A stretch of DNA of 64,000 nucleotides from Penicillus capitatus (Eukaryota; Plantae; Chlorophyta), in the NCBI GenBank assembly GCA_965649825.1, contig OZ287704.1, forward strand, positions 914,301 through 978,300, written 5' to 3'. Numbering within the stretch: the first letter of the stretch is position 1; the number at the start of each line of letters is the position of its first letter. Shown one piece after another: positions 1 through 36,085 of the stretch. Position numbers and translations under genes: made by a program. The notes beneath the pieces were generated by a model. That model was not told the DNA's origin and ran no database searches. It worked only from the letters and a program-made list of their open reading frames with translations.

Positions 1-957
1 GAGATCCACTGAAAAGCACAACCGATTGGCACGCTGTGTTGCCCAAGGATATGTCTTTTCCTGAAGATATCATCAAATCGACACGTCCTGGTCCAGAGAC
101 AGAGTCATACATGATAAGCATGCGCCACCAGTTCGGTTGCACAGCAGAGCAAGGCACTGTGAAAATGCGAATTGCGCAGTCGCTGCATCACTGTCTTACG
201 CATAACGGAAACAATGGGCGACTCCGTATCCTTTATGTCGCCTTCGATCAGTCTCTGTAAAATCCCATGAAGCAATCTGTCATTGTATCCCAACCATCCA
301 CTTGGGTCACACTCCCATATGTTATCCATTCATCACCTGTAGTAAAGGTATAGGGCTATTTTGGCTTCTTTTCCTTCAAAAAGTCGTTGCACGAATCCCT
401 TGGCGTGATTCACAACCGGCACCTCCACCACCGATGTGTCACATCATCTCCACCGCCCGTCCACGAATCTCACCGTCAGGTCTTCGTTTCGATTGGATCC
501 TCTCAGAATGGCAAAGAGTGCGTGTGGCGATTCCTTGTCCTGATGCGTATCTCTTCAGATTCTCCGTTTCTCGCCGCCTTGTCTTACCATGGAAGAATGC
601 AAAGCGTGGAGCCAGGTTTGCAATGGGCGCATTTCCAAAGGTCTCGTCGTCGATGTCGTCCATCAGTCGCGCTTTATCGAGTGTGACGAAATGACAAGGA
701 AGCGATGTTGGTTCAAAAACGGACGAAGTTCGACATATGGGTTGAGATTGTACGACGTGCTGCGACGGTACGTAGCCTTCGAAGGAATCTGGTTGGATTT
801 CTATCGCTTCGTCTATTTTGGTCGTCGCTGTTTCCGCAGTGCGAGTCGCCGAGCGTAGAACGCGTCCTCGTCTGTTTCGCTTTTTGAGCGACGTCGGCCA
901 TCCGTTCTTTGTACATAGACATTCACATCGTCGGCAAGTGTTCGCGACGTCGTACAT
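1..957 (-). CDS. Retinoblastoma-related (RB_A pocket domain) protein, 5' part; continues beyond left edge
   Basis: Manual splicing gives ...LQTWLHALHSSM|DKESPHALFAILRGSNRNEDLT|VPVVNHAKGFVQRLFEGKEAKIALYLYYR|LLHGILQRL...LRNSHFHSALLCCATELVAHAYH|EKTYPW, which follows RB_A motifs in order (W-L; P-S-x-x-L; LYYRVL; FHxxLLAC-x-x-E-x-V; FPW). Start codon uncertain. Confidence 0.65.
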
Positions 958-1309
958 AGGTCGTTCTCATGTCTTCCTCGTTCTTTACTATCTTCGAAAG
1001 CGACTTGTCCCTTTCTCTGACCGGAGTCCAGAAAAACTTACGAACATCCTGGAAGCCAGAAGCGCAGCAGAGTGCTTTGGCGGCATCCACACAACAGCCG
1101 TCATCGAACAGCGGCAACAAATCGCAAATGTACGAACGCGATTCGATGATGGAGACTCAATATGAAAGAAGGTGTGTTTCTAGCTCCGGTCAGTTGCAAC
1201 AGATTGAGGATGTTGATTGGAAAAGCGGGACGTCTTTACATGATGTGCCACGAACAACGAAAAGAGGACGCGTCGCTGTAGGGTTTCTTTCTCCAGGCAT
1301 CTTTGTTGA

Positions 1310-4300
1310 ATGAGGGTTTCATTAGTGGCTGTTGTTTTTTATACTTCTGCTTTCTAGTGCGTCGCTTGGGCGGGCGCAGCGTGAGAAGTCAAAACGCAAA
1401 ACCCTACAGACGGATATCGACGCACTCCTGGCGCTTAAAGATGCCCTACAGCTGCAAGAGGTATTGCTGGAATGGAATGATACCTCAGATCCATGCGATG
1501 ATGGATGGAAATATGTCATATGCGATTGCGATGGGTTTCCGGACGGCCTTCAAAATGAGCGATCGCATTGCGAGAACTATACGGCAACCGATCAGGATAG
1601 AATTGTATATTTGGAACTCAGAGAAGGCAGTGCACGAGAGAATTATACAAGCTTGCCTGACGCCCTTGGAAATCTCACAGAACTCAGATGGCTTGCCATA
1701 GACTCATTCCTGCTCAATGGTAGCCTTCCGGAAACCTTTGCAAATTTGACGCAGCTGAGATACCTATCGCTGGCTGAGAACACACTAACAGGTGAACTTC
1801 CGGACTTCCTTGCAGACCTGGAATACCTCAAGACACTGAAGCTCCATGCCAACAACTTCACCGGCGAAATACCTAAACGCTGGTGCAAGACAGACTGGGG
1901 ACTCTTCAATCCAGATACCAATGAGACCACCTTTACGATTCACGAAAACCCATTTCTATGTGGTAAACGACCAATGCCATTCTCGTCGTTGCACACACCA
2001 TCTCACACTTTTTTTGTAGGAAAGATTCCCAAGTGTGCTGCCAAGCAGTTGACGAGCATTGTTAACACCTGGCTTTATAATGACGATTTCGAAGCGCTGA
2101 AGAATGAAGGACACAGAGGGGACTGCGATTCAGAAGAACCTGTCTGCAATTCGGACATGGATGGATGCAGGATCCGCACTCCAGAATATTGGACGAATCC
2201 GGAGAACATTAACTTCAATTTTATAAAATTCGAAGATCCAGAAAGTGGCATCGATCATTATGAGTTTAGCATCGGCAGGAATGCAACAACGACTAATGAT
2301 ACTTATGATCTGTCCGATATATTGCCCATGCCAGAAGAAAGCACAGACTCATCCAATCCGTCGGTAGACAAACGCATGCATTCTTTATGGACAGTCGATT
2401 TTGATGTTTTTTTTTGTAATGGACAGAGGAACGAGATCGGTGAGGATTCCGTGATTAAAGTTCAGTTCAACTCGACCGAGTGGGACAAAGGATTTGTTGA
2501 GGGGCAAACATACATCGTTATCCTCAGGGCCTTCAATGGAGCAGGGCCTCCGCTCAATGCGACGATAAACAGCACACAAGTGATCGTGGATTTCTCGCCC
2601 CCAGTGTTCGAAAAAGTCTTCAACACGTACGTATGTCTATCACGTGATATGTGTCCAAGACTGGAGGATTGACGATTTGCAAATGCATCTGTAGACTTGA
2701 AGGGAGGACGGTACCCAATATGGAGTATGGATCGCCAATTGGAGCATCCTGGGACGTTGTCATTGACCCGCATACTAATGTCTGTAGACATACTTGACAA
2801 GCCTCGCATGCATTTGTGCGATTTTTAGGTGACCCATCTTTCTATTGCACTCGAGAGACGAGCGGCTCAAGAAGCGAATGGCACAGTGGAACACTTTGAA
2901 TTTGTCGAAAAACGTGACATCTCAGCAAACGCGACCAACGCGACGTTTGAAAAGACGGATGTGCGAGTACGGTGCGGATGTCGAAGATCTGCGGGGACGA
3001 CTGTGTGTTGGCAGGAAGGGGGTATATACCGTTTCAATCTGACAGCAACCAATGAAGCAGGACTCGTTGCATACCGAGTTTCATCCGCATTTCTTGTCAA
3101 CAAGTCAAAAGGGTGGTGCGTCCTTTCTCCAGCCCATGCATGCAACGTTGATAACAGATGCCGTTTTCTGCAGGACTCTCATCGGTATACACCCGGGCTT
3201 GTTTCTGGGGATCATTCTTCCGGTTATTGTGACAGTGATTGCCGTTATCTGCTACATTGCCATTCGCCGATTTTTCAGTTCTAACACTCTCGACCTTCAT
3301 CTGTACATGAAGGAATACGTCCATGAGCTCATGGGGATGACAGATGACGAGTTGTATGCAGCTCCGACTTCACAAGAAAACGACGAAAATCTTGCCCTTG
3401 TTGTGACAGGCACCCCGATTCCTTTCTTACAAACCATTATGCACAATGACTCTTTTTCAGATATCGAAGACTCTACAGCTCAGTCTGAGCGAAGCGATCA
3501 GTTGTTCAAGGAACTGATAAGCACGCACAATCAAGTACTGTCTTCCTTGCTATCAGCACGCGCTGGGATGATGCATTAGATTGTCGACGATCTGTCACGC
3601 AAGTTTGGAGGGTGTGAAGTTTGCCAGGAAGGAGATTCATTCACCATTGCTTTCCCTTCCATTACCAAAGCTGTCAATTTTGCATTGACTGCACAAGAAG
3701 AGTAAGATCCCTCCCTCTGAGTCAAACGCTGTTTGCATTGAGTGCACAGACTCTTGCGTCATCCCTGGAGGAAAGAGATACTTCGCTTGCCTGGCTGCCA
3801 TCCTGTGAAAACCGCCAATGGAACTGTCACTCTGTCAGGCGTACGCGTCAGAATGGGAATCCATTGGGCATCGATTCATGGCGTTTGCATGAAAAATCAC
3901 AGACTCTTTGACGCGAATTTGATCAAAGGTCCCGTCGTGGACCTCACAAAAGCAATTGCCGATGCAGGTTTGTTGCTCGCTTGAGAAGAGAACACACGGT
4001 AGGGAACATGCTGTCGATGAAGGTCATGGAGGTCAGGTTTTGTTAACACAGGCTGCTTGGATGCAGCTGTATCCGGTCATCTGTCTTTGTAAGTTTCCGA
4101 CGGTTTATCATCTGGGGTTGTACAGAAAAACTGGGAGCGAACACACATCTGAACTGCATCTCATTTATTCCATTACAGAATGGTTGGGAACAGGCATCGT
4201 GCGGAATCCTGTAAATTTGCGAAAATTTGAGCAGGTCATCATTCTTTCTCGTCATGCTTTGTCACTTTTTTTGTCTCATTCTTTTGCTTGATAGGTGATT

Positions 4301-6308
4301 AAGGGTTCGGGTTTCAACAGTATCCCTTGTCCAATAGGAGATTCCGACGCCACCTTGGCATTTGTTGCTACTCGATTGGTCACTGCTGGGGACAATCGTC
4401 TTCCTGTGGAGTTGGCAGAGAATCTGTACAGTATCATCGCATCGCAAGCACAATTGTTCCAGGGCTATGTCGTTTCGATTGATAAAAGAAGGGTACCATC
4501 CTCTCTGCGAGCCACGCAGACATTAAGTCCAGAGTGGCATTTTTGCAGGCGCGCTTTTTGGTTGTGTTTACCAAGTCCATTGATGCTGTTCGTTTCACAC
4601 AAGTGTGTCAGCTGAAGCTCGTTTTATGCAAATGGCCAGCTGAAACATCAAAGTTTTTTGGGGAAGAAGTTTTCACGCATTCTCGTCCGCCGATTCCACT
4701 CTTCAACGGCCCTCGAATAGCGATGGCGATACATACCACTGATGCCTTTATGCTGAACGGATTCAGTGGGAATCTGTCCAATGGAAATGCCTCCGGACAG
4801 ATTACGGGTGCCGGTATCACACTTGTCTGCGATCTCGTAGAATTCTGTGATGGTGGACAAGTGGTTCTAACCGAGAAAACATGGCAGAGAACACAACACA
4901 GTCTTCCGGGCCGTCGTAAGATCATCAATCTTGGAAGGCATATTGTCAGCACAAGCAATGCTTCATCAATGCTGTTGATTGAAATGACACCCTATATGCT
5001 GTCCGCTAGACAGTTTAAGCCGTTTGATGCTCTCGAGCAGACGGAAATGGGGTATCACAATGCACCGCCGATCAATCGACCGTTTACTGCTGCTTTTGTC
5101 GCTGTTAATAAGCCACGACAAGTTGTTATGGCCGAAAGAGAATGTGGATCTGATCAAAGTCAGGCTGCTCTGGATGCGAAGCCCGAAGCATTGATTGTCT
5201 ACGAACAGGCACTGGAACTTTATGCTGATCTCCTTCGACGGAGTTTGAAAATGTTCGAGGGATACGAGAGCAAGCAATTGAGCCCGGGAAGATTCTTTAT
5301 CGTCTTCTCGGGATTCAAGGATGCCATTCTATGGGCCTGTTATTTTCAATCAGAAATGCTCGAGCTTCCATGGCCAGAGAAACTGCTGGATATGGACGAA
5401 TGCAGTACACAGCACTGTCCCTTCACACATCGAGTGCTGCGAAGAGGATTGGGGCTGAGAGTTGGAATGGCCAATGGCCGTGCAGCATTCAAGGCTCCAA
5501 CCAAAACAGGCCAAGCTGATTACTACGGCGTCGTCACAAACTTAGCATCTCGTGTATTGTACATTGCCGCTCCAGGTCAAATCCTCATTCAACCAGGAGA
5601 TGGATTCTCGGATCTCCCGGTACGATGGATCAAACTGGATAAATTCTCTGGAGAGGAAGTAGGCATCCTCTCTTTCCCAGATAGCAAGGATGGCGTATCC
5701 ATGCAAGAACTGGCAGTCGAAATCGTACACGTCGGAAGCTTCTTGGCAAAAGGCATTACAGAACTGACAACAGTGTATCAGGTGGTGGGACGTTTCTTCA
5801 TTGAGAGGCGGATGTAGGATCACATTCTCATTGTTCTCTTTAGGCACAAGTATCATCTCTAGCTGTCCGCCAAATGTCAAAGATTAATGATAGCTTAACA
5901 GACGGCTCCACTCTGAGTCACAGACCTATTCGAAACCCATTCCTCTCGTCCAGGCTGTTTGGATGGGTCAAAGATGTCATGTGGCAGCTGCAGTATTCCC
6001 TCTCTGATTGGTCCATCAGAAAAAATCGCCACCACATGTCTCCTTCCTTTTCAGCGATCGCCTCATTCATGACTCGAGAGTTGTGTGTGTCTGTTAGGTT
6101 TTCTCCCTCATATCTGCATTCGATGAGTGACCAAAATGGATTGATGAGTCGAATGTCTGGTTGCGCTGCTCTGGAATTTGGCGCATCTTCTCGACAGAAC
6201 AAAGATCTCTCCAGTCAGACATACGAAATGTCTCACTTGCGCCGCGGTATCTACGCACCTTCAGGTTCAGGACTGGGGGGCTTGACTCCGGCAGATGATC
6301 AAGTGTAA
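1310..6308 (+). CDS. Receptor-like LRR / Fn3-like / TM / triple class III nucleotidyl cyclase protein, paralog 1 (multi-exon)
   Basis: Hydrophobic leader, LRR N-cap (DPCDDGWKYVIC), LRRs (LGNLTELRWLAIDSFLLNGSLP), DPESGI and NGAG Fn3-like motifs, TM (LFLGIILPVIVTVIAVICYIAI, about 3200-3265), then three cyclase-like units (VVT|DIEDST, EGDSFTIAF, VRVRMGIH, GGQVLL; GPRIAMAIH; ADYYGVVTNLASRV). ATG at 1310 is out of frame by one T in the T6 run at 1335-1340. Confidence 0.85.
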
Positions 6309-6573
6309 TGGACAAGTTTCGCAGTTGCTCTTAGAGTGTGATGTGACAGCGCCAATCCAATTCTGCCTCAAGTGATTCGTTCGCCGTTACTTAGCGTTCG
6401 ACGTCCACGACTCGTAGAATCACTCACCATCACGTACGTTCGTTTCTTCGTTCACGCTCAAAGTAATGTCACTTCTGTTGATAGTATCGACTTCAGCGCC
6501 CTTTTCATTTGCGTATAGACCTTGTTCTACTGCACGTGCGCCTTTGTTTTTGGTGTGCAGCTGCGTTGGGGTT

Positions 6574-9500
6574 ATGCCTGACCTAAACAGGCAGCTTCTT
6601 GCGTCACTTCAGCGACGCCGACGTTACAGACGACACCACTTTCCGGTAATTCCCTCCCCTTTCCATTCATTCCCTGCGTCATACCCAGCACTACTCATCT
6701 TATTGTTTTTCGGGACAGGTGTTCGAGTTTCCTTGCATTCTTTTGTTGTTTCTTGGTATTTCCAGCGTTATGTCTCAATCTGAACTTAGTGGGGAGGACG
6801 AGCCCGTGCCCACTTACCAAAAAGACAAGACAGCACTGTTGAACATCAAAGCGGCGTTGCAGGAGAGTCTCGTAGGCAATCGATCGATCCTCGAGAATTG
6901 GACAGAAGATTCGGACCCATGCATAAACGGCTGGAGTCTTGTTTTCTGCGATTGCCTGACAGCGCGTCCTGTTCTCCCTGCCATCACCAACAACTCAGAC
7001 AGCACGTTCTGTACGAATTATACAGAACCAGACGGCACACGGCGTGTTGTTGCCCTATATTTCAGAGGAGGGACGGTAACGGAGGAAAAGTATTCGGGAA
7101 ATCTCACCAGTGTCATTGGAGATCTTGACCGTCTGAGTTACCTTGATCTAAGACAGAATGCATTTGTGGGAGACATTCCAGATTCCTTCTCAAGTCTCGT
7201 CCACCTGAAGTTCCTCTCTATGGCGGAAAATCAACTGACCGGAACGATTCCAGCATACTTCAAAAGATTTAGGCAGCTTGTGCGGCTGGAACTCAATGAC
7301 AATGATTTTAGTGGACCCCTTCCTGAGATTGCATGTGGAAGAGGACATCGTGGAGATGAAGATCCTCAGCTGTATAGAATCGTGGTCTCTGGAAACGCTG
7401 GACTCTGTGGCGATGTGCCAAGCTGTATGCAAAGAAAAGTCGTTAATGTGAATGGCACGGCGCTTAAGCATCCCGAATACGATTTCAATCAGGCGACCAG
7501 CGGAGTCTGTGATGTGACACCACCTGTTTGCGAGAGACACGAAGGATGTCAAGTCTCGATACCCGAATACTGGACGAATCCAAACAATATCAGTTTTACG
7601 TTCACGCCCTTCACCGATCCAGAGTCTGATATTAAAGGATATGATTTTCAGCTGAGGCAAGTGGCTGGTGTAAACGTAGAACCCTTCAATCTCTCCACTG
7701 CCGTTGTTATCAATATTTCAGACAGCCAACTCGACATCAAAAACACGACGGAGGAGAGGAAAGTGGGAGGGCAGACGATGAATCTTGTGGTCTACCTTGT
7801 GTCGATCAATGAGGCCAACATCACTGGGAGTCTGCAAGCCGGTGTGGAGTACAGTGTGAGTGTCATAGCCACCAACAACGCTGGACCTCCTCTCCAATAC
7901 AACATCACCAAGGAGCGTGTGAAATATGACCCTACAGAACCGGAGAAGACTGATTTTTTCAACACGTTGGCTGGTCCCTCTCTGCTCGACCATTGAATTT
8001 CGCGCCTTCTAGGCCCAATAAGACGAATAGTGACAAACAAGACGATAATGGATTGCTTGGGGTGTCGTGGAACGAAACCTTAAGGGATGTAGAGTCGGGT
8101 ATCAAGAGCATTCGATTGGCCGTATGCACACACACGCTACCAGAAGAAGACTGCGATGGTGTCTACACCGTGAATGTGACGATACTGGGAGAAGGGGAGA
8201 ACACCACCACTGTTGAAAAGATACGTCAGGAAAACGCCATTGCAGAGGAGACTGAAGGGGGGAATATTACTGTGGAGGACACAAGAACTCACTGGATTAT
8301 TAAGAAAGAAGATGCAAAACTTACGGTGTTTTTGACCTCATCACCACGCGTGCAGCATTTTGTTTGACAGGTGGGTCGAAGCTATAGGTATAAACTGGAG
8401 GTCACAAATGGAGCTGGTCTGCAGAGAGTACTCGAATCGACGGAGTTCGAATTGACTCATCGTGGTTCCAAGTTGTCTTTCTTTTGGCATCTCTGTGCTG
8501 ATGTAACACCTCTCTCTGTCTGCAGCTTTGTGGAGAAACTCCGCTACGTTGTCATCGCTGCTGCTGTATTTGTCTTCGGCGCAATCACTACAGCTGCACT
8601 TGTCTATTTCACATCCAAGATCCGAAAGAGAACGCAATTTAATGCAGATGAACATCTCAAGGCTTTTATGTACCATGTCATGGATTCCTCGGAGGAAGAT
8701 GTCAGCACCTCTTCAGTGCCTATCAATGATCAACAGGAGTTGGCATTCGTCATTACAGGTTACTTCTGAGCATATCATGTGGGTATCTGATAAACCTTTA
8801 TGCTTTGGTAGATGAGGAAGCATCCACCGAACAATCGCGAGTGAACGAATCGGCGTTCAAAGAGTTGAGGGACATTCACGACATGGTCGGTGTCCCATTG
8901 GCCAAACCATCTGCTGGAGAATGCGTTTGCTATGGTGTTTAGATTATTCGTGATACGTATGAAGAGTATCTCGGCTATGAGATTATCACAGAAGGCGATT
9001 CTTTTCAGCTGGCATTCAGCACTGTCTCTAATGCCATCCGCTTCTGTGTTGAAGTGCAGCACAAGTTTCTGGAGTTTCGATGGAGTCCAGATATCCTCCG
9101 TCTGCCCAGCTGCAATGTCGTGAAGGATGACCGCGGAAAAGACATCATTTTCCGAGGTCCTCGTGTACGCATGGCTGTGCATTGGGCCAAAAAGGAGCTG
9201 GTGACCAACCGAGTGCATTCCTTCACCAAGCATCGAATATTCGAGGGGCCAGCTTTTGAGACGGCCAAGGAATTGTGCGATGCAGCATTCGGTGGACAAA
9301 TTTTGATGAGCCATGAAGCATGGGTGCATTTCGGAAACGATTTTTCCACAGCCGGCTTTCCAACGATCGAACTCCTGGGATCCTATCAAATGCTTAGATG
9401 GCCAGAAGCAATGTTCATCTACAACATAACACAACGTGTGGGCAAGAAACTGAACCGATCCTTTCCTTACCTGCGAGACTTGCAATGCGTCGTAAGCTCC

Positions 9501-12059
9501 ATCCATCTGCACGAGAGGACATCGCGGGACAGCACTGAGAGATCTCGTATGGCAGGTTTCAAGAGAGAAGAGCGTGAACATTATTGCCCCACCAAAACCA
9601 GACAACAAAGGCGCATTGACATTCGCAGCACTGAAACTGCAAACCATGACAGATGACCCTGAAAGCCCAGTGATTGAAATAACATTCGATATCATTGCCT
9701 GTCATGCGCAGCATTTTCTGGGACATATCTTCCGAATAGATCGAAACGAAGTAGGATCCGTTCTGTATACACAAAGAAGGCTGAATCGAATGATTGGTGA
9801 TCGTGGTGATGCAGAAAGAGGTCCTTGTCTCATTTGGCGCTACTATTGATGCCGTGCGTTTTGCCTACGTCATTCAGATGGCATTGGTCTTACATTCATG
9901 GCCTGTCGAAGTGACGGCCGTGTGTGGCCCCACAATCCCTGGTCCAGAGCAGATCCCTCTTTTCCACGGACCACGTGTTTCTATCGGAATTCATCAGACT
10001 CAGAGCTTCGGAATCAGTCTCAGTTCCAGCAAAACAGATCCAGGTAGCCAAGTAACAGACTATGCAGGCCACGGTATTTCATTTGCTCGCCGATTGGCTG
10101 CCGTGGCACATGGTGGGCAGATCATCTTGTCAGGTCGTACGTGGACAACAGTACAGAATTCACTTTCCTATCGTTCACAGGTCTTCTCCTTTTTCTCCTA
10201 TCAAACGACAGCGATGATGTGCTGAGACATGTGTGTGTGTTCTGTCTGTCTAGACATTGAATCTCGGCAAACATATACTGGATGATGAGTATAACCATCC
10301 CGTTTGGTTGTTCGAGCTGTTGCCGGTAGATCTGAAAGACCGGAATTTTCCGATTGTCAAGACCAAGGATCAAATTGAATCGGGGTACAGAGATTCCCCA
10401 TCCATTGACGATAACATTGCCATCGTCTTTGCAAAAGTGGATAAGCCACGGGTAAGATACAGGCACGATGGATGATCTCTCGGATCCATCTCTGTGTGGC
10501 ATTGGCAGCTCATTCGGCGCTTCGAAGAGCGAAAAGATGTTGCAGATGTGTCTGAACAGGAGATGCACGATGCGCTGTCGGTGTATTATCAGTCTGTTAG
10601 TATTTTCTCGACAATTGTGCGCAAGCGGTTGAAGAGCTACAACGGTTATGAGTGCAAAGAACCAGAAATGGGAAAATTCACGCTTGCATTTGCTGAGCTG
10701 AAGAACGCCATTCTGTGGGCATGTCATGTACATTCAGAAATGCTGGCACTGGATTGGCCGATGAAGCTGTTGACATTGGAAGAATGCCAAGCCGTCCTGC
10801 GTCTTGGCAGAGTGGTTCATAGAGGATTGAGGGTCAAGATTGGCATGGCCTATGGTAAAGTCTTCGATAAACGTCCCATCAACACAGGACGCGCCGATTA
10901 CTTTGGAGCCATACCGAATCTGGCAGCTCGGGTTTCATCTCTGGCACGACCGGGGCAAGTTCTCATCCATTCCAGCACAAACTTCGACAAGAGAGATATT
11001 GTGTGGATGAGCAACGATGCAGGACTTATGCTCTATGATGAACCATTGGAACCAGCAATCGATGGAGCGTCCGAAGTAGCTGTGGAAATATCCAAGTTGG
11101 GAATGTTCCTGCTTCGGAGCTTCAACGAACTCAAAATGCTTTATCAAGTATCACGACGCACCACCCATTCTTCCCTTCTGCCATGTCTGATGGCGCCATC
11201 TGTGTGGGATTTTAGGCACAGCCTGCGTCTGTAGCCACACCAGAACGCTTCGGCAGTACAGATGTGGCAAGTATGTACAGTACAGATACGCATCATCGTG
11301 TACCGAATACCATGTCAAGATTCTTCAATCACTTGCGATTCAAGAACATCTTGACAAGACATATTCCGGAACCATCCTCTTTTCTAAGCATCACCAGTTA
11401 CCCACATGGTTTTGGTGGAACCGCCTCTCATTCGCAACCTGGAGTGTTTCGTCCTGTGAGCCCACCTCTCTTTCCGTCTGGTCTTCCACCTGGAGAGATG
11501 GCTGCAATGGGAAGTGGCAAGAACGGAGAAACCATACATCTGGAAACGATACGTTCACAACAGACGGATGGCCATGGAGATAATCAATCAGGCAGTGACC
11601 TGGAGAATCTCATCAAACTCTCTCCTCGTTCGCCCATTAACCTCAACGGTTCCCATAACGCCGCATCATCAACGCACAGTACCCATGGATCCAGTTCGTA
11701 TGTTACACAACCATTGCTCCCTGCCGGAGAAAGACAGTCTGAGATCTCACCACAGATAACGAAAATGGATTCCTTGAATTCAGATGACTGCATCGTGTCC
11801 TTTGGAACAAACGAATCTGCTTACAAAGTCATTCCCCCTGCTCAATCACTAGGAACAAGCGACGATGACACAACACCAGCTGATTATGGAAATCGACTGG
11901 CAACACTGTACTCAAATGTTACAGGTAAGGACATACATCTTTTGTTGTCATCACACATGTATTCTCTGTCTGATGTTGGGTCGTGTAGGAGCAAACAGCA
12001 CTGCACAGGAATTCTCGTTTGTTAAAAATCAGAAACCCGACGCATCGGATGCAAATTGA
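6574..12059 (+). CDS. Receptor-like LRR / Fn3-like / TM / triple class III nucleotidyl cyclase protein, paralog 2 (multi-exon)
   Basis: Same architecture as paralog 1: DPCINGWSLVFC, LRRs, DPESDI and DVESGI motifs, TM (YVVIAAAVFVFGAITTAALVYF), cyclase units (VIT|DEEAST, EGDSFQLAF, GPRVRMAVH; GPRVSIGIH; ADYFGAIPNLAARV), Ser-rich tail. ATG 6574 joins 6719 through a phase-0 intron; stop 12057-12059 follows the intron starting gtaagg at about 11926. Confidence 0.85.
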
Positions 12060-12531
12060 CGATGATGGAGATTGCTATTTGTTTCTTAGACGCACGCAAT
12101 CCGTCACATTTGTGAACCCTCGAAATCATGATGTATGTGTCTTTTCTGTTTCTGCATACAAACTGAGAGTGCTGGTCGATTTCGTAAATGGCTCTTCTGT
12201 TGCGAAAGAACGTGCACCACTAAGCTCACTGGATTTGCCATGTCAAGATTCTCGACAACTCTTTCCAGACACCTGTGTAGAGCATACATATATTATCAGT
12301 CTGAAGCACGATTGCATGGAATCCCTCTCGATTCCCAGGGGCGGTTCCTTCGGCAGGACAATGATGATGACTATTGTTTGTCCTTACATGCAAGATGTTG
12401 CTGAACATGCAGTTTGCTTATAGCAGTTATACATACGCGTCTTCTCAAACTCAGTTGTGTAACCAACTATTCCTTTGACATGCACGCACTTACTGATGGA
12501 CACGTCATCACCATCACTGTCAGTCAGTCAG

Positions 12532-15500
12532 TCAGTTTCCAATGTGGAGCTCAACCGAATCCAATTGCTGATCTCCTTTCATGATGGCGACCTGACTGGA
12601 TAACTGCCACGATAATTTGAACGACAGATCCGCGTCTCTGTCCGATTCTCTGGAAAGGGGAATGGTGGAATGGATCTAGACAATGAATGACACGATGCAT
12701 CGCAAGACGGACAAGGCAATGCTCACCTGGTGGATCTTGACGGGTTCCAGTGGGGCACGAGATCTGGAAGAGAGTTTCTGCTGCCAAGACATGCGCAGAT
12801 CCCATACGCAAAGTGCACAAACATCAGGACACAGGGCAGCAATCACATCACCATCTTTACGGAAACTCAAAGCGCCGATGCGTAAATCTTGGGCAAGCTA
12901 GACAAGTCACACACACATACATCGATGTGTTACGATGAGGTGGATAGATGGCGGTACTTGTGTTGAAGTCCATTGACCGGCGAGCTCGTAGAAAACATGA
13001 CCCAGAGAGAGCGATCTCTTTTTGACACCAGTATTCAGATGATAGACCGCAATGACTTCTTGACGATCGCGGGCGTTTTCGGAGATTTGTGTTCCTGTTG
13101 TTTGAATATGCGGAAAACCGACGGCGATGGTGCCACTCTCGCGATGGATGTCCACTAGTGGATAGCAGGAACTCATCTCTTTAAGCAATGCCAGAATGGA
13201 CTAAACAGAGGAAGGGTAAAGGAATAAGAGACGATGTATGTATGGCTGTACTGTCATGGCCAGTTTTCTAGAGGCTTGATCAGAAGGATCCAATGCTTTC
13301 ATGAGCGCCGCCACAAGCAAAGGCAGTTCATGCACAATAATCTGCATTCCATCCCTGCGATGCAGCAGGGACCCGATGCTCTGCACAGCCGCCGTCAGGG
13401 AGAACGGAACAGCACAGGTCGACGGAAATCTGATCGGCACACATCGAAATCGATGATGGCATCACTCAGTCGAAATCGATCAACACCTTTTGAGAAGACT
13501 GTGGAGAATGAGTGGAAAATCGAGGCTGCCTATGGAGGCAATGAGGGAGATGAGGGCATCTTTGTACGAGGACACATCTTCAGTACTGCACGCCTCAGCG
13601 CGGTTTCCTTGATTTGTTGTCGCATGTGGAAGAGGCACCGTGCTATACGCCTTGCCAGTGATCGATTTGCTTTGACCAAAGGTCGTCTTCAAGTTACTAA
13701 AGCTCTGGAAATGCCCACTCATTCCGCGCTCCAGAAATCCTGAAGCCACAAAACGCAAATGCCCCGGAGCAAGATCCAAAACCGACCCACCTCTGAAACT
13801 CGATCCGCCAGTACTGCCATCGATGGCAGAGCGTGGAGACAGTCCTTTCATGTCGGCCATGGAACGCACTTTGGAGAATGGATTCTTTGGACTGCGATCT
13901 GGTCCACTCATGGGACTGAGCATTGCCGATTTGCTTTTGTGTCCCAACATCCCCAGCTGATCACATGTGTCGAAGATCCTTCTGAGAAACTGTGTTGGAT
14001 CGAGGATGGAGGTAAACCATCCAGAGGATTCGATCCCCGTAAGTCCATCTGCCAAAATCTGAGCAGCTAATCTGGGAGCCCCAGTGGCTCGGATAGGCGA
14101 AGTGGACAACGCCGCCAGACAGGGCACCACCGAAGAGAGCATCTCTATCGGTGCTAATCGGCAATGCACACAGCAGATGGCTCCGCTGACCAGTATCTAA
14201 CAGAAACATGCGCAATTAGCTCTGTTAATAACATGGACGCACGCATCTAACCTCATGTTGATGTTTCATCAGGCGTTCTGGATCTATCGGTGACGGATCC
14301 GTTGCGAGTCTCTGTGCCGTACGGATCTCTTTGATGCCGATGAGATGGCTTTCGGCTTTCTCTTCCAACAGCCCTTGTGCAATGAGGTTCAGATCGGTGA
14401 TCGATGCCAACAGAACGCGAGATGTTTCCCTCAGGACGGCTATCGAATCATCCCAGAGATCGACGATGCGTCGAAGAGTGGGATGACAGCTGTCCATAAT
14501 GATCTGAGGGAACTGAATGGCATACAGTGTTGCCAGTATGCTACAAGCACTGCACACCACTTCGTTCATAGATTCGTGCATCAGCTGCTTCGATGCTGCC
14601 ACCATAAAAACGAGATAATCGGCAACAAAGTCGCCGTTGGAGAGCCACAAGTGTCCGACCACAGGCTCTTCCTTAACGTGGCAGGGAAAATTGAGCGTCA
14701 TAGCGTTGGAGGCTCCGTAGACAATGGCCTGCGTTAGACTGTAGCCTCGACCTGTCCTTGGAAGAGGACCGCGACGCATGGAAGGACTCTCTGCTGTCGG
14801 ATCCGCCAATACAGCCGCCTTCATCATCTGATGAACTGCCAAATCTGCCTTGTCATCAACTCCCCAGACATGTAGCGTCGCCAAGCTCATTGCCAGACGC
14901 ATTGTCCATGTCTCTAACTCTCCTTCGACTTTGGCCGCTTCGGCATTGTCAGCAGAAACAGACATCCACTCTGTAGAGCACCATAAAAACGTCGTCGCTG
15001 AGCTTTTGAAGTGTCTGCTGACCTGTGAATTCGAGTTCCATCAGCGAAACATCTGGAGTAGGTCCAGGCTGTAAAGAAAAATCCTTGGAAGAAGTGCGTA
15101 TTGCGGATACGGATGAAAAATAAGAGATCGGTGTGTGAGGATCGCTTTCTTCTGAAGCTTGCGCTTTGGCACGGCGCTCTTCGATGCCTTCTGTGAACAG
15201 TCGTGCCATCTCTGTGGCCTGTTCTCCCAGAAAGATTCTGTCTTGGCGAGCGTGATACAGATCCCATACAATCAAAACCGCCTTCTGCGTATCGGGATGG
15301 ACCAAACACGAAAGAAATCCTCTGCACACGACGTTCAGATGTCGGTACAGGTGAAAGATGGCTGACCTTATTCCATCCCATTCTATCTGCAATGAGGTTT
15401 GCAGCGGATTCCCTGCACAGACGCGAACGATTTTTCTATGCTCGATGGACACCAGGGCAATGACGCCATCGTTGCCTACTGTCGCAACACAGGATGCCCA

Positions 15501-17945: not shown

Positions 17946-19394
17946 TCATTGCGTTTGTTCTGCTTCGTTGATTTCGTGGCAGATTTCTTCCAATCTGGAC
18001 ACGATGTACGAGAAATCTGGGCGAGTCTCTGGAGCTCTCTGGAGACATTCGTGCATCACTTCAGCCCACACATCATGACAGCCATGTGGTCGATCCAGTC
18101 GCAGGCTTCCTTGCATAATGCCTTCCAGCAGATCTCTTGGAGAGAGCTCTCGATAGGGCATTTCGCCCATCTCCCAGATTTCCCACAGCACCACGCCAAA
18201 AGAATAGACATCCACCTTCTCATTCACGAGGTCTGTGATGTTGCCCTGGCTTCCCACGCGTTCAATACTCGGAAAGAGCTCGGGTGCCATCCATGGAAGT
18301 GTGCCTCGCATATTACCACTGACAAACGTCTTAATCTTTGCCTTTGATAATCCCACATCTCCAATCTTCACGATAGGGTTGTCCAGGTCACGCAAGTCAC
18401 ACAACAAGTTCTCACACTTCAAATCGAAATGAATCACGTTTCGATTGTGCAGAAACTCCATTCCTCGCGCAGCACGTAAAGCCACAGCGACTCTGAGCTT
18501 CTGTGTGTCCGATGGACCTCCTTTCAGCTGCATCAGCTTGTTCTTCAGGGATAAATGCGGCAGATATTCAACAACAAGACCTGGACTAGGGCCATTGTTC
18601 AGCATCCCATAGAAGGATACGACACAGGGATGGCGAAGACAGGCCAACGTACTGGCCTCTTGACATGCCATATCCATGCTTTCTCTGTCAGTTAATGTAT
18701 GCCATTCCTTAACTGCCACTTCGACGCCTCTCCAAAGCGACAGCTTAACAGAAGCAAACTGACCGCGACCAAGTTCATATTTCATGGAAAGTTCATCGTA
18801 GAAAATAAACGGCGTCGAAGGCAAGGAATACGTCATCACCGGTGATGGAGTGGAACTCTCAGTCATCGGAGACTCCATCAACGAAGACATACCCATAGAT
18901 CCCATCTGTAACTGCAATGCCGGACGCGGAGGCATAGCCGTTACTGGCGGTAAATGCTCATTCGTTTCCGATTCCACTTTTCTCGCATGAGGTCTCGTGG
19001 TGCTCCTCACCGAGCCAATTGAACGATTGACAATGGTGGCCGGTCTAGTGAATTCTGGCAGCAGAGCAGCCCTCTCCATCATGGAGCTATCCATTCTATC
19101 AAGCGTCCTCTGATCTGTACTTGTACTCATGTTGTCTCCAGATGAGGCTGTACTAGCAGATTGAATTCTACTTCCAATCTCTGGAAAGGATGTTGTAGAC
19201 TGGTCTTCGGTTTTACGTAGTGTTGGGAAGCGTATCTGGGACATTTCGCTAATCATGGAACCCAGATTTTTGGCTTTCTCGTCGAGTAGGAAGCCCAACA
19301 CCTTCCCGAAGTGAACGCGGACGTTCTGTACTTCTTCCTCCTCACTCGTGTCTTCCTCGCGGGCAGAAACGCCCGCATGACACCCACCGCCCAT
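17946..19394 (-). CDS. Raf-like (TKL/MAP3K) protein kinase, intronless
   Basis: Complete kinase motifs GRGQFASV, VAVK, HFDLKCEN, DVG, MRGTLPWMAPE, DVYSFGVVLWE; likely start MGGGCHAG at 19394. Confidence 0.9.
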   Translation of the reverse strand: MGGGCHAGVSAREEDTSEEEEVQNVRVHFGKVLGFLLDEKAKNLGSMISEMSQIRFPTLRKTEDQSTTSFPEIGSRIQSASTASSGDNMSTSTDQRTLDRMDSSMMERAALLPEFTRPATIVNRSIGSVRSTTRPHARKVESETNEHLPPVTAMPPRPALQLQMGSMGMSSLMESPMTESSTPSPVMTYSLPSTPFIFYDELSMKYELGRGQFASVKLSLWRGVEVAVKEWHTLTDRESMDMACQEASTLACLRHPCVVSFYGMLNNGPSPGLVVEYLPHLSLKNKLMQLKGGPSDTQKLRVAVALRAARGMEFLHNRNVIHFDLKCENLLCDLRDLDNPIVKIGDVGLSKAKIKTFVSGNMRGTLPWMAPELFPSIERVGSQGNITDLVNEKVDVYSFGVVLWEIWEMGEMPYRELSPRDLLEGIMQGSLRLDRPHGCHDVWAEVMHECLQRAPETRPDFSYIVSRLEEICHEINEAEQTQ

Positions 19395-19584
19395 TACCCT
19401 TAAAAAAAAGCTAAGCGTCGGACGCGGCCATCTCTTATGCTTTTTTGAATCAACCGACCGTTCACTCGCGCGACAGTCGCTCTTGTGTCGACCCATTTGC
19501 AACACAGCACGCTTGATGCCACACAATTCTGAAGGTAAATGCAAAATCGAATCGCACGTCTATCATCCATCCGTTCCTCTAACG

Positions 19585-33294: not shown

Positions 33295-36085
33295 TTAGGT
33301 GGCACAAGCTTCCTTTTCTGCCCGTTCAGCCACAGGCGGAACCGTCTCAACCACCTCCTCTTGCACAACCACTGCGTCTCGCTTCAGGGAAAGCATAGAT
33401 GGGTGCTTTTGTGCGAAGACTTCATAGACGTCGGCCTTCACCGCTGGTTTCTTCAATGGCTTGGCTGGGTATTGCAGGACGATCTTCTCAAGCTCTTTGC
33501 CTGACAGTTCTTTCTTCTCTAAGAGCATCTTGGATCCTGCCTCCAGTGCATTGGAATAGCTGGTGATGATGTCTAGGCTTTGTTGGTAGGTTTCCCACAG
33601 GATTGCGTAACACTCTGTCAATATCCTGCGCAACATCGTCGTGCGTTGAAGAGGAAGAAGAAGGATCAGACTTGTGCATCGTGGAATCGCAACATTGAAA
33701 CATGCCGCCTTGCAGTCCTTTGCCGAACACGTTCTCGTCAATGTTGTCCACCGTCACCTCAAAGTGGCGCTGAGTGCTTCCTGTGCCGGGTGTGATGGGT
33801 GCGTAGGAGGTGAGACCCAATTCTGATAGACCATAATTTGTGACGATCTTCTCTGCCAAACGAAAAGCGCGACCCAGATCTTTGGCGCCGTAGGATGAGG
33901 GTTCGCCATAGAAATGCTCTTCTGCTGCTCTGCCGGCCAAGATCACACATATGCGTTCCAACATCCGTGCTCGTGTCGTCATGGTGTAGTCTTCATCCGG
34001 GCCACGGAAGAAGACCGTTCGGGTGAACTCATGCCCACGAGCGATGATTGACAGCTTCTCAACAGCTTCCAAGCGCCCAGTGCGATCACGCAGGACCATC
34101 GCGACAATGCCTCGACCCATTTCGTGTACAGCAAAGCGTCGACCCGCTTTCAACGCTGCAGGCTGTACAGGAAGAAGGATACCATGAAGCACTCTGTCCA
34201 CGGCATTGTACACATCTTCTGACGTGATTTCATGTCCATCACGTCGAAGAGTTACCAGAGCAGACTCATTCAACACATTCTCCAGTTCAGCCCCTGCCAA
34301 TCCAGGCAGATCTCTCGCCAGCTGTAGCAAATCCACATCATTGGCAAGTTTATACTTCTTTGCATGAAGCTCCAGGATTTCGTGCCGGCTGTTTGTGTCC
34401 GGCAGGACGACCTGTATCTTTCTATCAAATCTGCCAGGTCTTTGGAGTGCAGGATCAAGAAGATCAGCTCGGTTTGTTGCGCCGATGAAGACAACGCCCG
34501 ATTCGGAAGAGAAGCCGTCCATCTCTGTCAGCAATTGATTCAGTGTCTGCTCCCGCTCTTCATTGGTCATGACACCAGCGTCAGCTCTTTTGATTCCAAC
34601 AGCATCGATTTCGTCGACGAAGATGATACAGGCCTGTTCTTGAGAACGAGCTCTCTTGAAAAGATCGCGCACTCGGGCAGCACCGACGCCGACAATAGCT
34701 TCGACAAATTCACTCCCACTCATTTGATAGAACGGCACGCCTGCCTCTCCAGCAATGGCCTTCGCAATCAGCGTCTTTCCCGTTCCTGGAGGACCTTCGA
34801 GTAAAACTCCCTTGGGTGGCTTTGCACGAACAGCTTGATACTTGTTAGGCTCTTTGAGAAACTGCAGCAAAGCATAAAATGTGCAAAACGGGAGATGACG
34901 ATTACCTCGACAAGTTGCTTAAGATCTTCGAGAATGCTATCCAGTCCTGCGATATCTTCAAAGAAGACGCCCGTTCGGCCATCTTTCCGTGCTCGTCCCT
35001 TTGACTGTGCAAACTCCATGGCCTGGACTTGGTCTGCAGGCATCTGCTTTCTCGGCTTGAAGACACCGACCATCAGACAGATGGCCAAGAACGTTAAAGC
35101 AAATATAATCATTGCCACTCTTGGAGCTATATGCCAGAAACCGTGTAAACTGGGCTCCTTCCGCGTCATTTGGAAAGAGATATCAATGAGCCCAGTAGCA
35201 GGCGACGTCAATCTCGAAGCTTCACTCTTTTTCAGGTAACCTCGATCCGCATACACCTCCTCCAGCTCCGTATCAGGCATCTTTCTCTGAAACGCTAACC
35301 CTAATCGCTCAAAGAGCTACATTCATGACCTCTGCTCTCTCTTCGGCGACAGCGATGGATGGGACCATACCTGCAGGTAGCCATAATTGTATGGACGCCC
35401 AATGTTCGATGCTCGATAGATCTGCGGAATGTCCACCAGGTCATGACGCGGAAACACATAATCTTCTTCGTAGGTATCTTCTCCAGGATTATTCAGTTCG
35501 CACCAAACAGGTTCTTTGCCTTTCTCCTGGACCACTGCTCTATAGCCAGAGAAACTTGGCCGGAACAGACGGCCGCGATCTTCAAAGAACAAGATCTTCC
35601 ATTCCGTTGAGTTTGGATTGAAGAGTGGCGATCTCCAGTTTCGCTCCTCTACTCCTTTGTACAGTTGCATAAACGGTATTTGCTTCATTTTACGCCAACA
35701 CGGCTCCTTCGCCTCCATTCCTTCACCCAAACTCTCCAGACGTGCAAAGGCAATTTTCTCACGCGTCGTGCGACCCACTGCTTCTTTCTTGACGGCGACA
35801 TGATACTGTTTCAGATCTTCGAACGAGGGACCTCTTGTGCAGATGCGCTGAACGTCGTTCGCTGAGAATTTAGGGTTTGGCCGAACAGTTTCCGTTTTCT
35901 TTTGTGCCTCCTGTTGCGTCACATCGTCAGTCATGTGCACGCGTCAAGAGCTATCATCGTCACGCACCGCATTGACTGAAATGAGGCGTCGCCTCGGCTT
36001 CCTTCCCCGTCCGAAGGCCACCGTCTTCCATGGAAATGCACTGAGAGAGGTCGAAGTACCCATTACCTGTCGAGTGAGAGACGAC
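33295..36085 (-). CDS. Plastid FtsH-like AAA+ ATPase lacking the HExxH protease motif (FtsHi type)
   Basis: Transit-like N-terminus, TM segment, Walker A GPPGTGKT, Walker B FVDEID, SRH ATNRADLLDPALQRPGRFDR; the M41 region has HEMGR (34112-34126) instead of HExxH. Confidence 0.9.

Follow-up and report, generated by a model that had tools for sequence, protein, structure and literature searches.

Land-plant receptors with leucine-rich repeats (LRRs) signal through kinases, and receptor-level synthesis of cyclic nucleotides in plants is disputed. Here we describe two genes, G1 and G2, that lie in tandem in a 64,000-nucleotide stretch of DNA from the green alga Penicillus capitatus (contig OZ287704.1, positions 914,301 to 978,300 of the forward strand; hereafter the window), and whose predicted products join a plant-type LRR ectodomain to three class III cyclase units through one transmembrane (TM) helix. 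We put at about 55% the probability that G1 and G2 are tandem type I membrane receptors in which the cytosolic module is an ATP-specific cyclase formed by units 1 and 3, with a dead unit 2.

The closest described systems are the receptor adenylate cyclases of trypanosomatids (T. brucei GRESAG4.1/4.3 and ESAG4), which are likewise type I single-pass proteins, large on the extracellular side and with a class III cyclase bearing the motif FTDIExST in the cytosol; they gave the best PDB sequence match to the G1/G2 module and headed its structure matches. However, their ectodomain is periplasmic-binding-protein-like, whereas that of G1 and G2 consists of plant-type LRRs and fibronectin type III (Fn3) modules, and they have a single homodimerizing catalytic domain, whereas each G1 or G2 chain carries three units, of which unit 1 and unit 3 divide the catalytic residues between them. 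Mammalian AC1-9 and soluble adenylate cyclase share with G1 and G2 the placement of an Asp pair and a Lys/Asp/Asn/Arg set on separate domains of one chain, with one active and one degenerate site, but they have 12 TM helices (two six-helix bundles) or none, no ectodomain and two cyclase domains. G1 and G2 instead have one TM helix and a large ectodomain, and between their two complementary cyclase domains lies an additional one that is dead. Fungal Cyr1/Cdc35 also unites LRRs and a class III cyclase domain in one polypeptide. In Cyr1 the LRRs are cytosolic and accompanied by Ras-association (RA) and PP2C domains and one cyclase domain, with neither TM helix nor ectodomain; in G1 and G2, by contrast, the LRRs stand N-terminal of the TM helix, after a signal sequence, and Pfam found no RA or PP2C domain. 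Plant LRR receptors (SERK/BAK1, FLS2, GSO1, PGIP) share with them an LRRNT_2 cap, 24-residue LRRs, a Cys-rich cap, a signal peptide and a single TM helix, and the repeat number of G1 and G2 resembles that of the short SERK-type ectodomains. Unlike the plant LRR receptor kinases, G1 and G2 have no kinase domain (no Pfam match to Pkinase or PK_Tyr_Ser-Thr), and two Fn3 modules stand between their LRRs and the membrane. Their output domain has a true class III cyclase fold, unlike the short "cyclase centres" that have been proposed, and are disputed, for plant kinase domains (PMC1867859). Finally, the animal receptor guanylate cyclases (NPR-A, GC-C) and the receptor cyclases of Acanthamoeba, which has 67 such genes (PMC4053784), are single-pass proteins whose ectodomain controls a cytosolic class III cyclase. 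These have ANF-receptor-type or other ectodomains and a kinase or kinase-homology domain beside one cyclase domain, with guanylate specificity in animals, whereas G1 and G2 have no Pfam match to ANF_receptor, no kinase-like domain, three cyclase units and ATP-type residues.

Receptor architecture and the cyclase module

In the first 13,000 nucleotides (nt) of the window (GC content ~48%), the forward strand is split into many open reading frame (ORF) fragments, as in an intron-bearing eukaryotic gene. In Pfam searches of the raw fragments, two regions each began with LRRNT_2 and LRRs and had a weak match to Guanylate_cyc towards their end. Spliced, these regions are two collinear paralogues on the forward strand, and their proteins are 33% identical. 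The same tandem pair is kept in two further genomes. The nearer one, L001, was located by a protein search with one ORF fragment and lies in an ENA metagenome assembly, on a contig of 1.6 Mb; it shares its gene order with window 581-13995, to which it is collinear with 87% of nucleotides identical, and contains the same two genes. The other, L003, is a more distant genome with 30-57% protein identity.

Both spliced proteins contain every part that an earlier note on this DNA had claimed, namely a signal peptide, an LRR cap with LRRs, two Fn3 modules, one TM helix and three cyclase units (Table 1), and LRRNT_2, the LRR families and Guanylate_cyc were all above their Pfam thresholds. LRRNT_2 scored 35.2 bits in G1 and 32.7 bits in G2 (cutoff 20.7), and Guanylate_cyc (PF00211) 37.0 and 32.7 bits, respectively (cutoff 21.9); LRR_8 and LRR_1 also matched both proteins, and LRR_14 matched G1. 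Each protein has approximately 4-5 plant-type repeats followed by a Cys-rich C-terminal cap. A phmmer search of the PDB with the G2 ectodomain exon returned plant LRR-receptor-kinase ectodomains and PGIP (GSO1, FLS2, PEPR1, BAK1 and PGIP), with E values down to 9e-75. For the membrane-proximal region, a profile built from 12 family members matched Fn3 domains of titin, contactin and myomesin in the PDB (E 6e-24 to 1e-4), and Pfam fn3 matched 11 of these 12 members.

A hydropathy scan found exactly two hydrophobic segments per protein, one N-terminal and the other a TM helix, which in both proteins is directly followed by basic residues. N-x-S/T sequons were 4-6 times denser on the predicted outer, N-terminal side. 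Judged by hydropathy, basic residues and sequon density, G1 and G2 are predicted to have an outside N-terminus of signal type and a single TM segment.

The fold of the cytosolic module, on which the identification as a cyclase had been made to depend, was recovered by both profile and predicted structure. Profile-profile comparison with hhalign showed the three units to be homologous to each other (units 1 and 2, probability 99.9%, E 5e-32; units 1 and 3, 99.8%; units 2 and 3, 99.1%). An AlphaFold2 model of the G2 cytosolic part (685 residues, 48-sequence alignment) is compact, with three beta-alpha-beta-beta-alpha-beta units, a predicted local distance difference test (pLDDT) value of 95.3 and a predicted template-modelling score (pTM) of 0.91; it replaced a model from 7 sequences (pLDDT 66, pTM 0.41) after a HMMER scan had supplied relatives. 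The top Foldseek matches of the G2 module in the PDB were all class III cyclase catalytic domains, with target-normalised template-modelling scores (TM-scores) of 0.77-0.87, including T. brucei GRESAG4.1/4.3 (1FX2 and 1FX4; 0.77) and the domains of mycobacterial Rv1900c and Ma1120 (0.84-0.87). By sequence, too, the closest PDB entries are cyclases of trypanosome type, not the class IIIa/b mammalian enzymes, and the first half of unit 1 and the second half of unit 3 map to the two halves of one T. brucei catalytic domain. A linker of ~45 residues connects the TM helix to the module.

Catalytic residues and competing readings

To compare the units, we tabulated the canonical cyclase positions in 22 family members. 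Unit 1 keeps the first metal-binding Asp (D1; 21 of the 21 ungapped members, one being gapped), the second (D2; 22/22) and the Arg of the RxG strand (22/22), and is without the purine-specifying Lys/Asp and the transition-state Asn/Arg. Unit 3 keeps precisely these, the Lys in 20, the Asp in 22, the Asn in 21 and the Arg in 22 of the 22 members, and has lost the metal-binding Asp positions, which are occupied by Lys or Arg in most members. In unit 2 all catalytic residues are lost, only the RxG-strand Arg remaining in most members. No single unit thus holds the full catalytic set. Because the residues are split complementarily between units 1 and 3, we predict one composite active site and not three; of the earlier claim of three cyclase-fold units, the three homologous units stand, with residues for a single predicted site. 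The same division, an Asp pair on one domain and Lys/Asp/Asn/Arg on the other, separates C1 from C2 in mammalian adenylate cyclases. ATP is the predicted substrate because unit 3 carries the Lys-Asp pair.

We postulate that units 1 and 3 pair head-to-tail to form one ATP-specific site, as C1 and C2 do in the mammalian membrane and soluble adenylate cyclases, with unit 1 supplying the two metal-binding Asp residues and the phosphate-binding Arg, and unit 3 the adenine-specifying Lys/Asp and the transition-state Asn/Arg. Unit 2 would then be a pseudo-cyclase with a structural or regulatory role, holding or gating this pair. The architecture suggests that a ligand bound at the LRR/Fn3 ectodomain would rearrange or re-oligomerise the cytosolic module and in this way set the rate of cyclic AMP (cAMP) synthesis; the two paralogues probably read different ligands. 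Both cAMP synthesis by G1 and G2 and its control by ligand are predictions from sequence.

To quantify the evolutionary pressures on each part, ratios of non-synonymous to synonymous divergence (dN/dS) were calculated against L001. Values were 0.04-0.10 in cyclase units 1 and 3, 0.21 (G1) and 0.09 (G2) in unit 2, and 0.14 in the C-terminal tail of G2; within the ectodomain, the LRR part gave 0.18-0.32 and the Fn3 part 0.27-0.49. These values indicate that all parts are maintained, the dead unit 2 included, and that the ectodomain is the fastest-evolving. Between G1 and G2, the ectodomains are 31-34% identical and the cyclase units 34-41%. The ectodomains are therefore only slightly more diverged than the cyclase units, and the earlier description of them as substantially diverged does not hold; G1 and G2 are old paralogues over their whole length, and ectodomain divergence is a weak argument for different ligands.

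Several observations weigh against the reading of G1 and G2 as receptor adenylate cyclases with a unit 1-unit 3 site, or against the models on which it is built. The RxG-strand Arg is not conserved in unit 3, and the Pfam Guanylate_cyc scores are modest (33-37 bits). When the module was compared by Foldseek with two-domain cyclases (soluble adenylate cyclase and AC9), one domain was superposed, with a TM-score of ~0.3; a sequential aligner would need to skip unit 2. Transcript support for a single gene comes from relatives and not from the source alga, and one of the supporting contigs, L004 (described below), is likely complementary DNA (cDNA) but has no poly-A tail, the alternative being intron-free genomic DNA. 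The start codon of G1 is uncertain, and is the least certain element of the models. In its first exon all 7 of 7 substitutions relative to L001 are non-synonymous (dS ~0), indicating either a freely evolving N-terminal extension or an exon that is partly untranslated, with the true start elsewhere.

The alternative that survives best, although we regard it as somewhat unlikely, is an active site formed in trans, by unit 1 of one chain and unit 3 of a second, with ligand-driven dimerization as the activating step and unit 2 as a spacer or homodimerization domain. The complementary residue pattern favours neither cis nor trans pairing over the other. Dimerization is the usual means of controlling single-pass receptors, and the T. 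brucei receptor cyclases, which are the nearest relatives of solved structure, require it for activity. However, the single-chain model is already compact, and its pTM of 0.91 suggests that the three units pack within one chain.

A second alternative is that the module is a pseudo-enzyme, in which the units bind nucleotides or partners, make no cyclic nucleotide, and signal through a scaffold or the C-terminal tail. The plainly dead unit 2 and the low Pfam scores agree with this, and 6YII, a class III cyclase-like ATP-binding protein without cyclase function, was among the structural matches. Yet in the 22 members, which come from no fewer than five classes of chlorophytes, seven catalytic positions divided between units 1 and 3 vary little or not at all, and the strength of purifying selection on these two units produces a pattern that is hard to explain without catalysis. 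We therefore consider a pseudo-enzyme unlikely.

That the receptor is instead a guanylate cyclase, or has mixed specificity, is in our judgement very unlikely. In favour of this reading, both activities fall within the Pfam family, guanylate cyclases are numerous in green algae, and specificity residues are not always predictive; the Ma1120 structures among the matches include specificity-swap mutants (PMC4215837). Against it, guanylate cyclases typically have Glu with Cys, Ser or Gly at the purine-specifying positions, whereas the Lys and Asp that prevail there in unit 3 (K1166 and D1246 in G2) are the adenylate cyclase pair.

The possibility that the LRR and cyclase parts are separate genes, raised in the earlier note as a challenge to the proposal, was not borne out by related loci and transcripts. 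L004, a JGI contig of 3714 nt, is a single ORF (P0022), open from the first base, that spans the second Fn3 module, the TM helix, the three cyclase units and the tail. Its identity to spliced G2 ranges from 53% (BLASTP, 1079 shared residues) to 62-63% (cytosolic part), and it agrees with 11 of 12 G2 splice junctions, all of those from 7966 on. In MMETSP mRNA assemblies, LRR/LRRNT_2 and Guanylate_cyc domains occur in one ORF in Tetraselmis astigmatica (1641-1665 amino acids, aa) and in Pyramimonas (1426 and 1486 aa), and the Ostreobium quekettii protein CAD7695706.1 can be aligned, at 32-35% identity, over ~80-90% of G1 and G2. An LRR/Fn3 receptor-like protein followed by a separate soluble or membrane-anchored cyclase is thus extremely improbable, even though the transcripts are those of relatives and prokaryote-style gene calls on related contigs split the locus into many ORFs, given that the frame is open across 27 GT/GC-AG introns in both the window and L001, that the L004 ORF is continuous to the tail, that the Tetraselmis and Pyramimonas mRNAs and the Ostreobium gene model join both parts and align nearly full-length with G1 and G2, and that both halves need the TM helix.

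Gene models and genomic neighbourhood

Gene models were obtained by a splice-graph search scored by codon usage and by the substitution pattern relative to L001, after which each junction was curated by hand. Three guides were used: indels relative to L001 that are not divisible by 3 must fall in introns, most intron positions are common to both paralogues, and the L003 alignment marks frame changes. Models from codon usage alone were noisy and were replaced by this conservation-guided curation. The resulting coordinates are listed in Table 1. Projected onto L001, both genes keep their frame with no in-frame stop, and the exonic indels in G1 are divisible by 3.

Table 1. Window coordinates of G1, G2, their parts and neighbouring genes.
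Feature	Window positions	Strand	Details and basis
G1	1146..6308	+	16 exons, 1444 aa
G1 exons 1-8	1146-1277, 1326-1962, 2020-2363, 2427-2626, 2695-2779, 2829-2966, 3015-3115, 3174-3409	+	
G1 exons 9-16	3461-3534, 3580-3701, 3750-3967, 4023-4234, 4295-4492, 4549-5781, 5844-6037, 6098-6308	+	
G1 signal-type segment	1266..1376	+	aa 41-61, GRVAWLLFFILLLSSASLGRA; hydropathy; split by intron 1278-1325
G1 LRR region	1407..2036	+	LRRNT_2 cap (1407-1526), ~4-5 LRRs, Cys-rich cap; Pfam; intron 1963-2019 inside
G1 two Fn3-like modules	2148..3113	+	aa 300-432 and 433-545; family profile vs PDB, Pfam fn3
G1 TM helix	3187..3267	+	aa 551-577, then RRFF; hydropathy peak 2.88; sole internal hydrophobic segment
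G1 cyclase unit 1, C1-like	3370..4225	+	aa 612-830; Pfam Guanylate_cyc aa 614-775; residue table
G1 unit 1 residues	D625 (codon 3409/3461-3462), D668 (from 3634), R724 (from 3850)	+	
G1 cyclase unit 2	4343..5031	+	aa 850-1060, without catalytic residues; hhalign, residue table
G1 cyclase unit 3, C2-like	5074..5846	+	aa 1075-1311; second stretch of Pfam Guanylate_cyc; residue table
G1 unit 3 residues	K1141 (from 5272), D1223 (5518), N1230 (5539), R1234 (5551)	+	
G1 C-terminal tail	5847..6305	+	133 aa; start homologous to G2 tail start, AQVSSLAV (G1) and AQPASVAT (G2)
G2	6574..12059	+	13 exons, 1588 aa
G2 exons 1-7	6574-6645, 6719-7965, 8013-8325, 8371-8471, 8526-8758, 8812-8885, 8943-9491	+	
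G2 exons 8-13	9556-9750, 9815-10180, 10254-10451, 10509-11147, 11216-11924, 11989-12059	+	
G2 signal-type segment	6640..6775	+	aa 23-43, after basic N-terminus MPDLNRQLLASLQRRRRYRRHHFP; hydropathy; split by intron 6646-6718
G2 LRR region	6821..7432	+	LRRNT_2 cap (6821-6952), ~4-5 LRRs, C-terminal cap; Pfam, phmmer vs PDB
G2 two Fn3-like modules	7544..8466	+	aa 300-440 and 441-576; family profile, Pfam fn3
G2 TM helix	8545..8613	+	aa 585-607, then KIRKR; hydropathy
G2 cyclase unit 1	8734..9482	+	aa 648-860; D656, D699, R756; residue table, hhalign, AlphaFold2
G2 cyclase unit 2, degenerate	9598..10337	+	aa 878-1078; residue table, hhalign
G2 cyclase unit 3	10401..11239	+	aa 1100-1337; K1166, D1246, N1253, R1257; Pfam Guanylate_cyc aa 1220-1273; residue table
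G2 C-terminal tail	11240..12056	+	~250 aa, Ser/Pro-rich, probably disordered; conserved with P0022 and P0023 to the C-terminus
Protein kinase gene	17946-19544	-	PK_Tyr_Ser-Thr, E 3e-53
FtsH-like AAA/M41 protease gene	33488-34870	-	
Ty3/gypsy-type ORF	54118-58521	-	single ORF, 1467 aa; gag, aspartyl protease, reverse transcriptase, RNase H, integrase

The end of G2 lies where the earlier note had placed it, position 12059 being exactly the end of the stop codon. The start that it had proposed for the first gene, the ATG at 1310, is out of frame and followed by an in-frame stop, also in the orthologous L001. A sequencing frameshift in the T-run after this ATG was considered and rejected, since L001 has the same bases and no indel, and an upstream first exon explains the frame. 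G1 likely starts at ATG 1146, with a short first exon spliced across 1278-1325. This ATG is preceded by an in-frame TGA in L001, and L003 has a 17-codon first exon with the same ATTAG/TGG acceptor as G1. The first exon of G2 has 24 codons, and gives the protein a Met and a basic N-terminus.

The 27 introns of the two genes are 45-73 nt each. Five of them (1278-1325, 1963-2019, 2364-2426, 3410-3460 and 6038-6097) are in frame and free of stops, and are therefore invisible to plain ORF reading, which adds spurious residues; they were detected solely through frame-breaking indels in L001 and through the paralogue and orthologue alignments. Intron 3410-3460 is a GC-AG intron in the window and in L001, and a GT-AG intron at the same phase-1 site in L003. 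It interrupts the D625 codon, which encodes the first metal-binding Asp of G1, and its removal restores the motif VVTDIEDST. These stop-free introns and the GC-AG intron show how easily such genes are mis-modelled, and automatic annotation of this genome is likely to contain many spurious insertions. The pentamer TGCAT was tried as a conserved intron motif and dropped, as only 6 of the 27 introns have it. G2 introns 9751-9814, 10181-10253 and 10452-10508 fall where G1 has a single 1233 nt exon (4549-5781), indicating that introns were gained or lost after the duplication.

The tail of G1 and the region between G1 and G2 (window 5800-6450) are 95-100% identical to L001, with no change over ~100 nt near 6105-6206. 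Synonymous divergence from L001 is 0.09 in this interval, compared to 0.25-0.48 in other parts. Such conservation suggests an additional constraint on the nucleotide sequence, for example from a G2 promoter, an untranslated-region element or an antisense RNA.

Examination of the rest of the window revealed no further copies of G1 or G2, and tRNA and Rfam scans of the window found no RNA genes. The protein kinase gene downstream of G2 is a separate gene and the nearest kinase. Its position after the receptor pair is kept in L001 (17394-20636) and L003 (17057-20681), both of which have a ChAPs-like gene beyond the kinase. The Ty3/gypsy-type ORF is probably a recently active long terminal repeat retrotransposon. 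The best named relatives of the FtsH-like protease are all from green algae, at 55-64% identity (Micromonas 56%; Chlorella, Pyramimonas and Asterochloris 60-63%). Low GC, tiny introns and a transposon had hinted that the window belongs to a "big outlier chromosome" of Mamiellales. We rejected this origin, as the protease is no more similar to that of Micromonas than to those of the other three genera and the receptors have their nearest named homologue in Ostreobium. A fungal or oomycete source, for which tiny introns and a ChAPs-like neighbour had spoken, was rejected as well, the best matches being all from Chlorophyta.

Distribution in green algae and implications

A HMMER scan of 1.8 billion representative proteins gave 376 representative clusters at E < 1e-30. 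Among the best matches, eight clusters (1332-1641 aa) have the cytosolic module from residue ~460-550, as in G1 and G2, and of the 26 best members 25 matched Guanylate_cyc and 8 matched LRRNT_2 in Pfam. Named members cover five chlorophyte classes: Ostreobium quekettii (Ulvophyceae), which provides the nearest named homologue of G1 and G2; Tetraselmis astigmatica (Chlorodendrophyceae) and Pyramimonas (Pyramimonadophyceae), both known from MMETSP transcripts; Gonium pectorale (Chlorophyceae; KXZ50125.1); and Chloropicon primus (Chloropicophyceae; QDZ18491.1). The combination of LRRs, a TM helix and three cyclase units, which the earlier note had proposed to seek in algal proteomes, thus has relatives in Ostreobium, Tetraselmis, Pyramimonas and others, and its assignment to a green-algal family agrees with the named relatives of the receptors and of the neighbouring FtsH-like gene, all of which are Chlorophyta.

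Other ectodomains precede the same module in other members, including Receptor-L, ANF-receptor (2 members), fn3, Laminin_G_3 with NHL, and longer LRR arrays; P0059, P0124 and P0080 are among the members with non-LRR ectodomains or longer LRR arrays. From the domain composition of these proteins, the three-unit module seems to serve algal surface receptors generally as an output module. Proteins of 1700-2500 aa from diplonemids (Diplonema and Namystynia) and an oomycete (Lagenidium) (P0042, P0044 and P0043) matched the profile in 4-7 separate stretches, indicating that multi-cyclase chains of trypanosome type exist outside green algae.

The earlier note knew of no characterised protein with this architecture, and neither the literature nor the databases yielded one. 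Relatives are named "unnamed protein product" (as is the Ostreobium protein), "hypothetical protein" or, automatically, "adenylate cyclase" (as is that of Chloropicon). Within the partial full-text coverage of our literature search, we found neither LRR-ectodomain cyclases nor three-domain cyclase modules described for algae, and cyclases go unmentioned in a 2026 survey of receptor kinases in chlorophytes.

The fusion of a plant-type LRR ectodomain to a true class III cyclase with intact, strongly constrained catalytic residues represents a different output for a plant-type receptor. The split active site predicts which mutations abolish activity, and raises the question of what role the conserved dead domain plays. 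More tentatively, and as a possibility that we rate below an even chance, chlorophytes as a whole may use a class of ligand-regulated receptor adenylate cyclases in parallel to the receptor kinases of land plants, with LRR, Receptor-L, lectin/NHL and ANF-type ectodomains feeding a module of undescribed topology, in which the dead middle domain bridges and controls an active unit 1-unit 3 pair. The relatives in Gonium, Chloropicon, Tetraselmis, Pyramimonas and Ostreobium make the family accessible in cultured algae. An adenylate cyclase activated by surface contact or pheromone has long been known biochemically in green-algal mating and, to our knowledge, has never been identified as a gene. 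If the broader proposal is true, receptors of this kind would be candidates for that enzyme.

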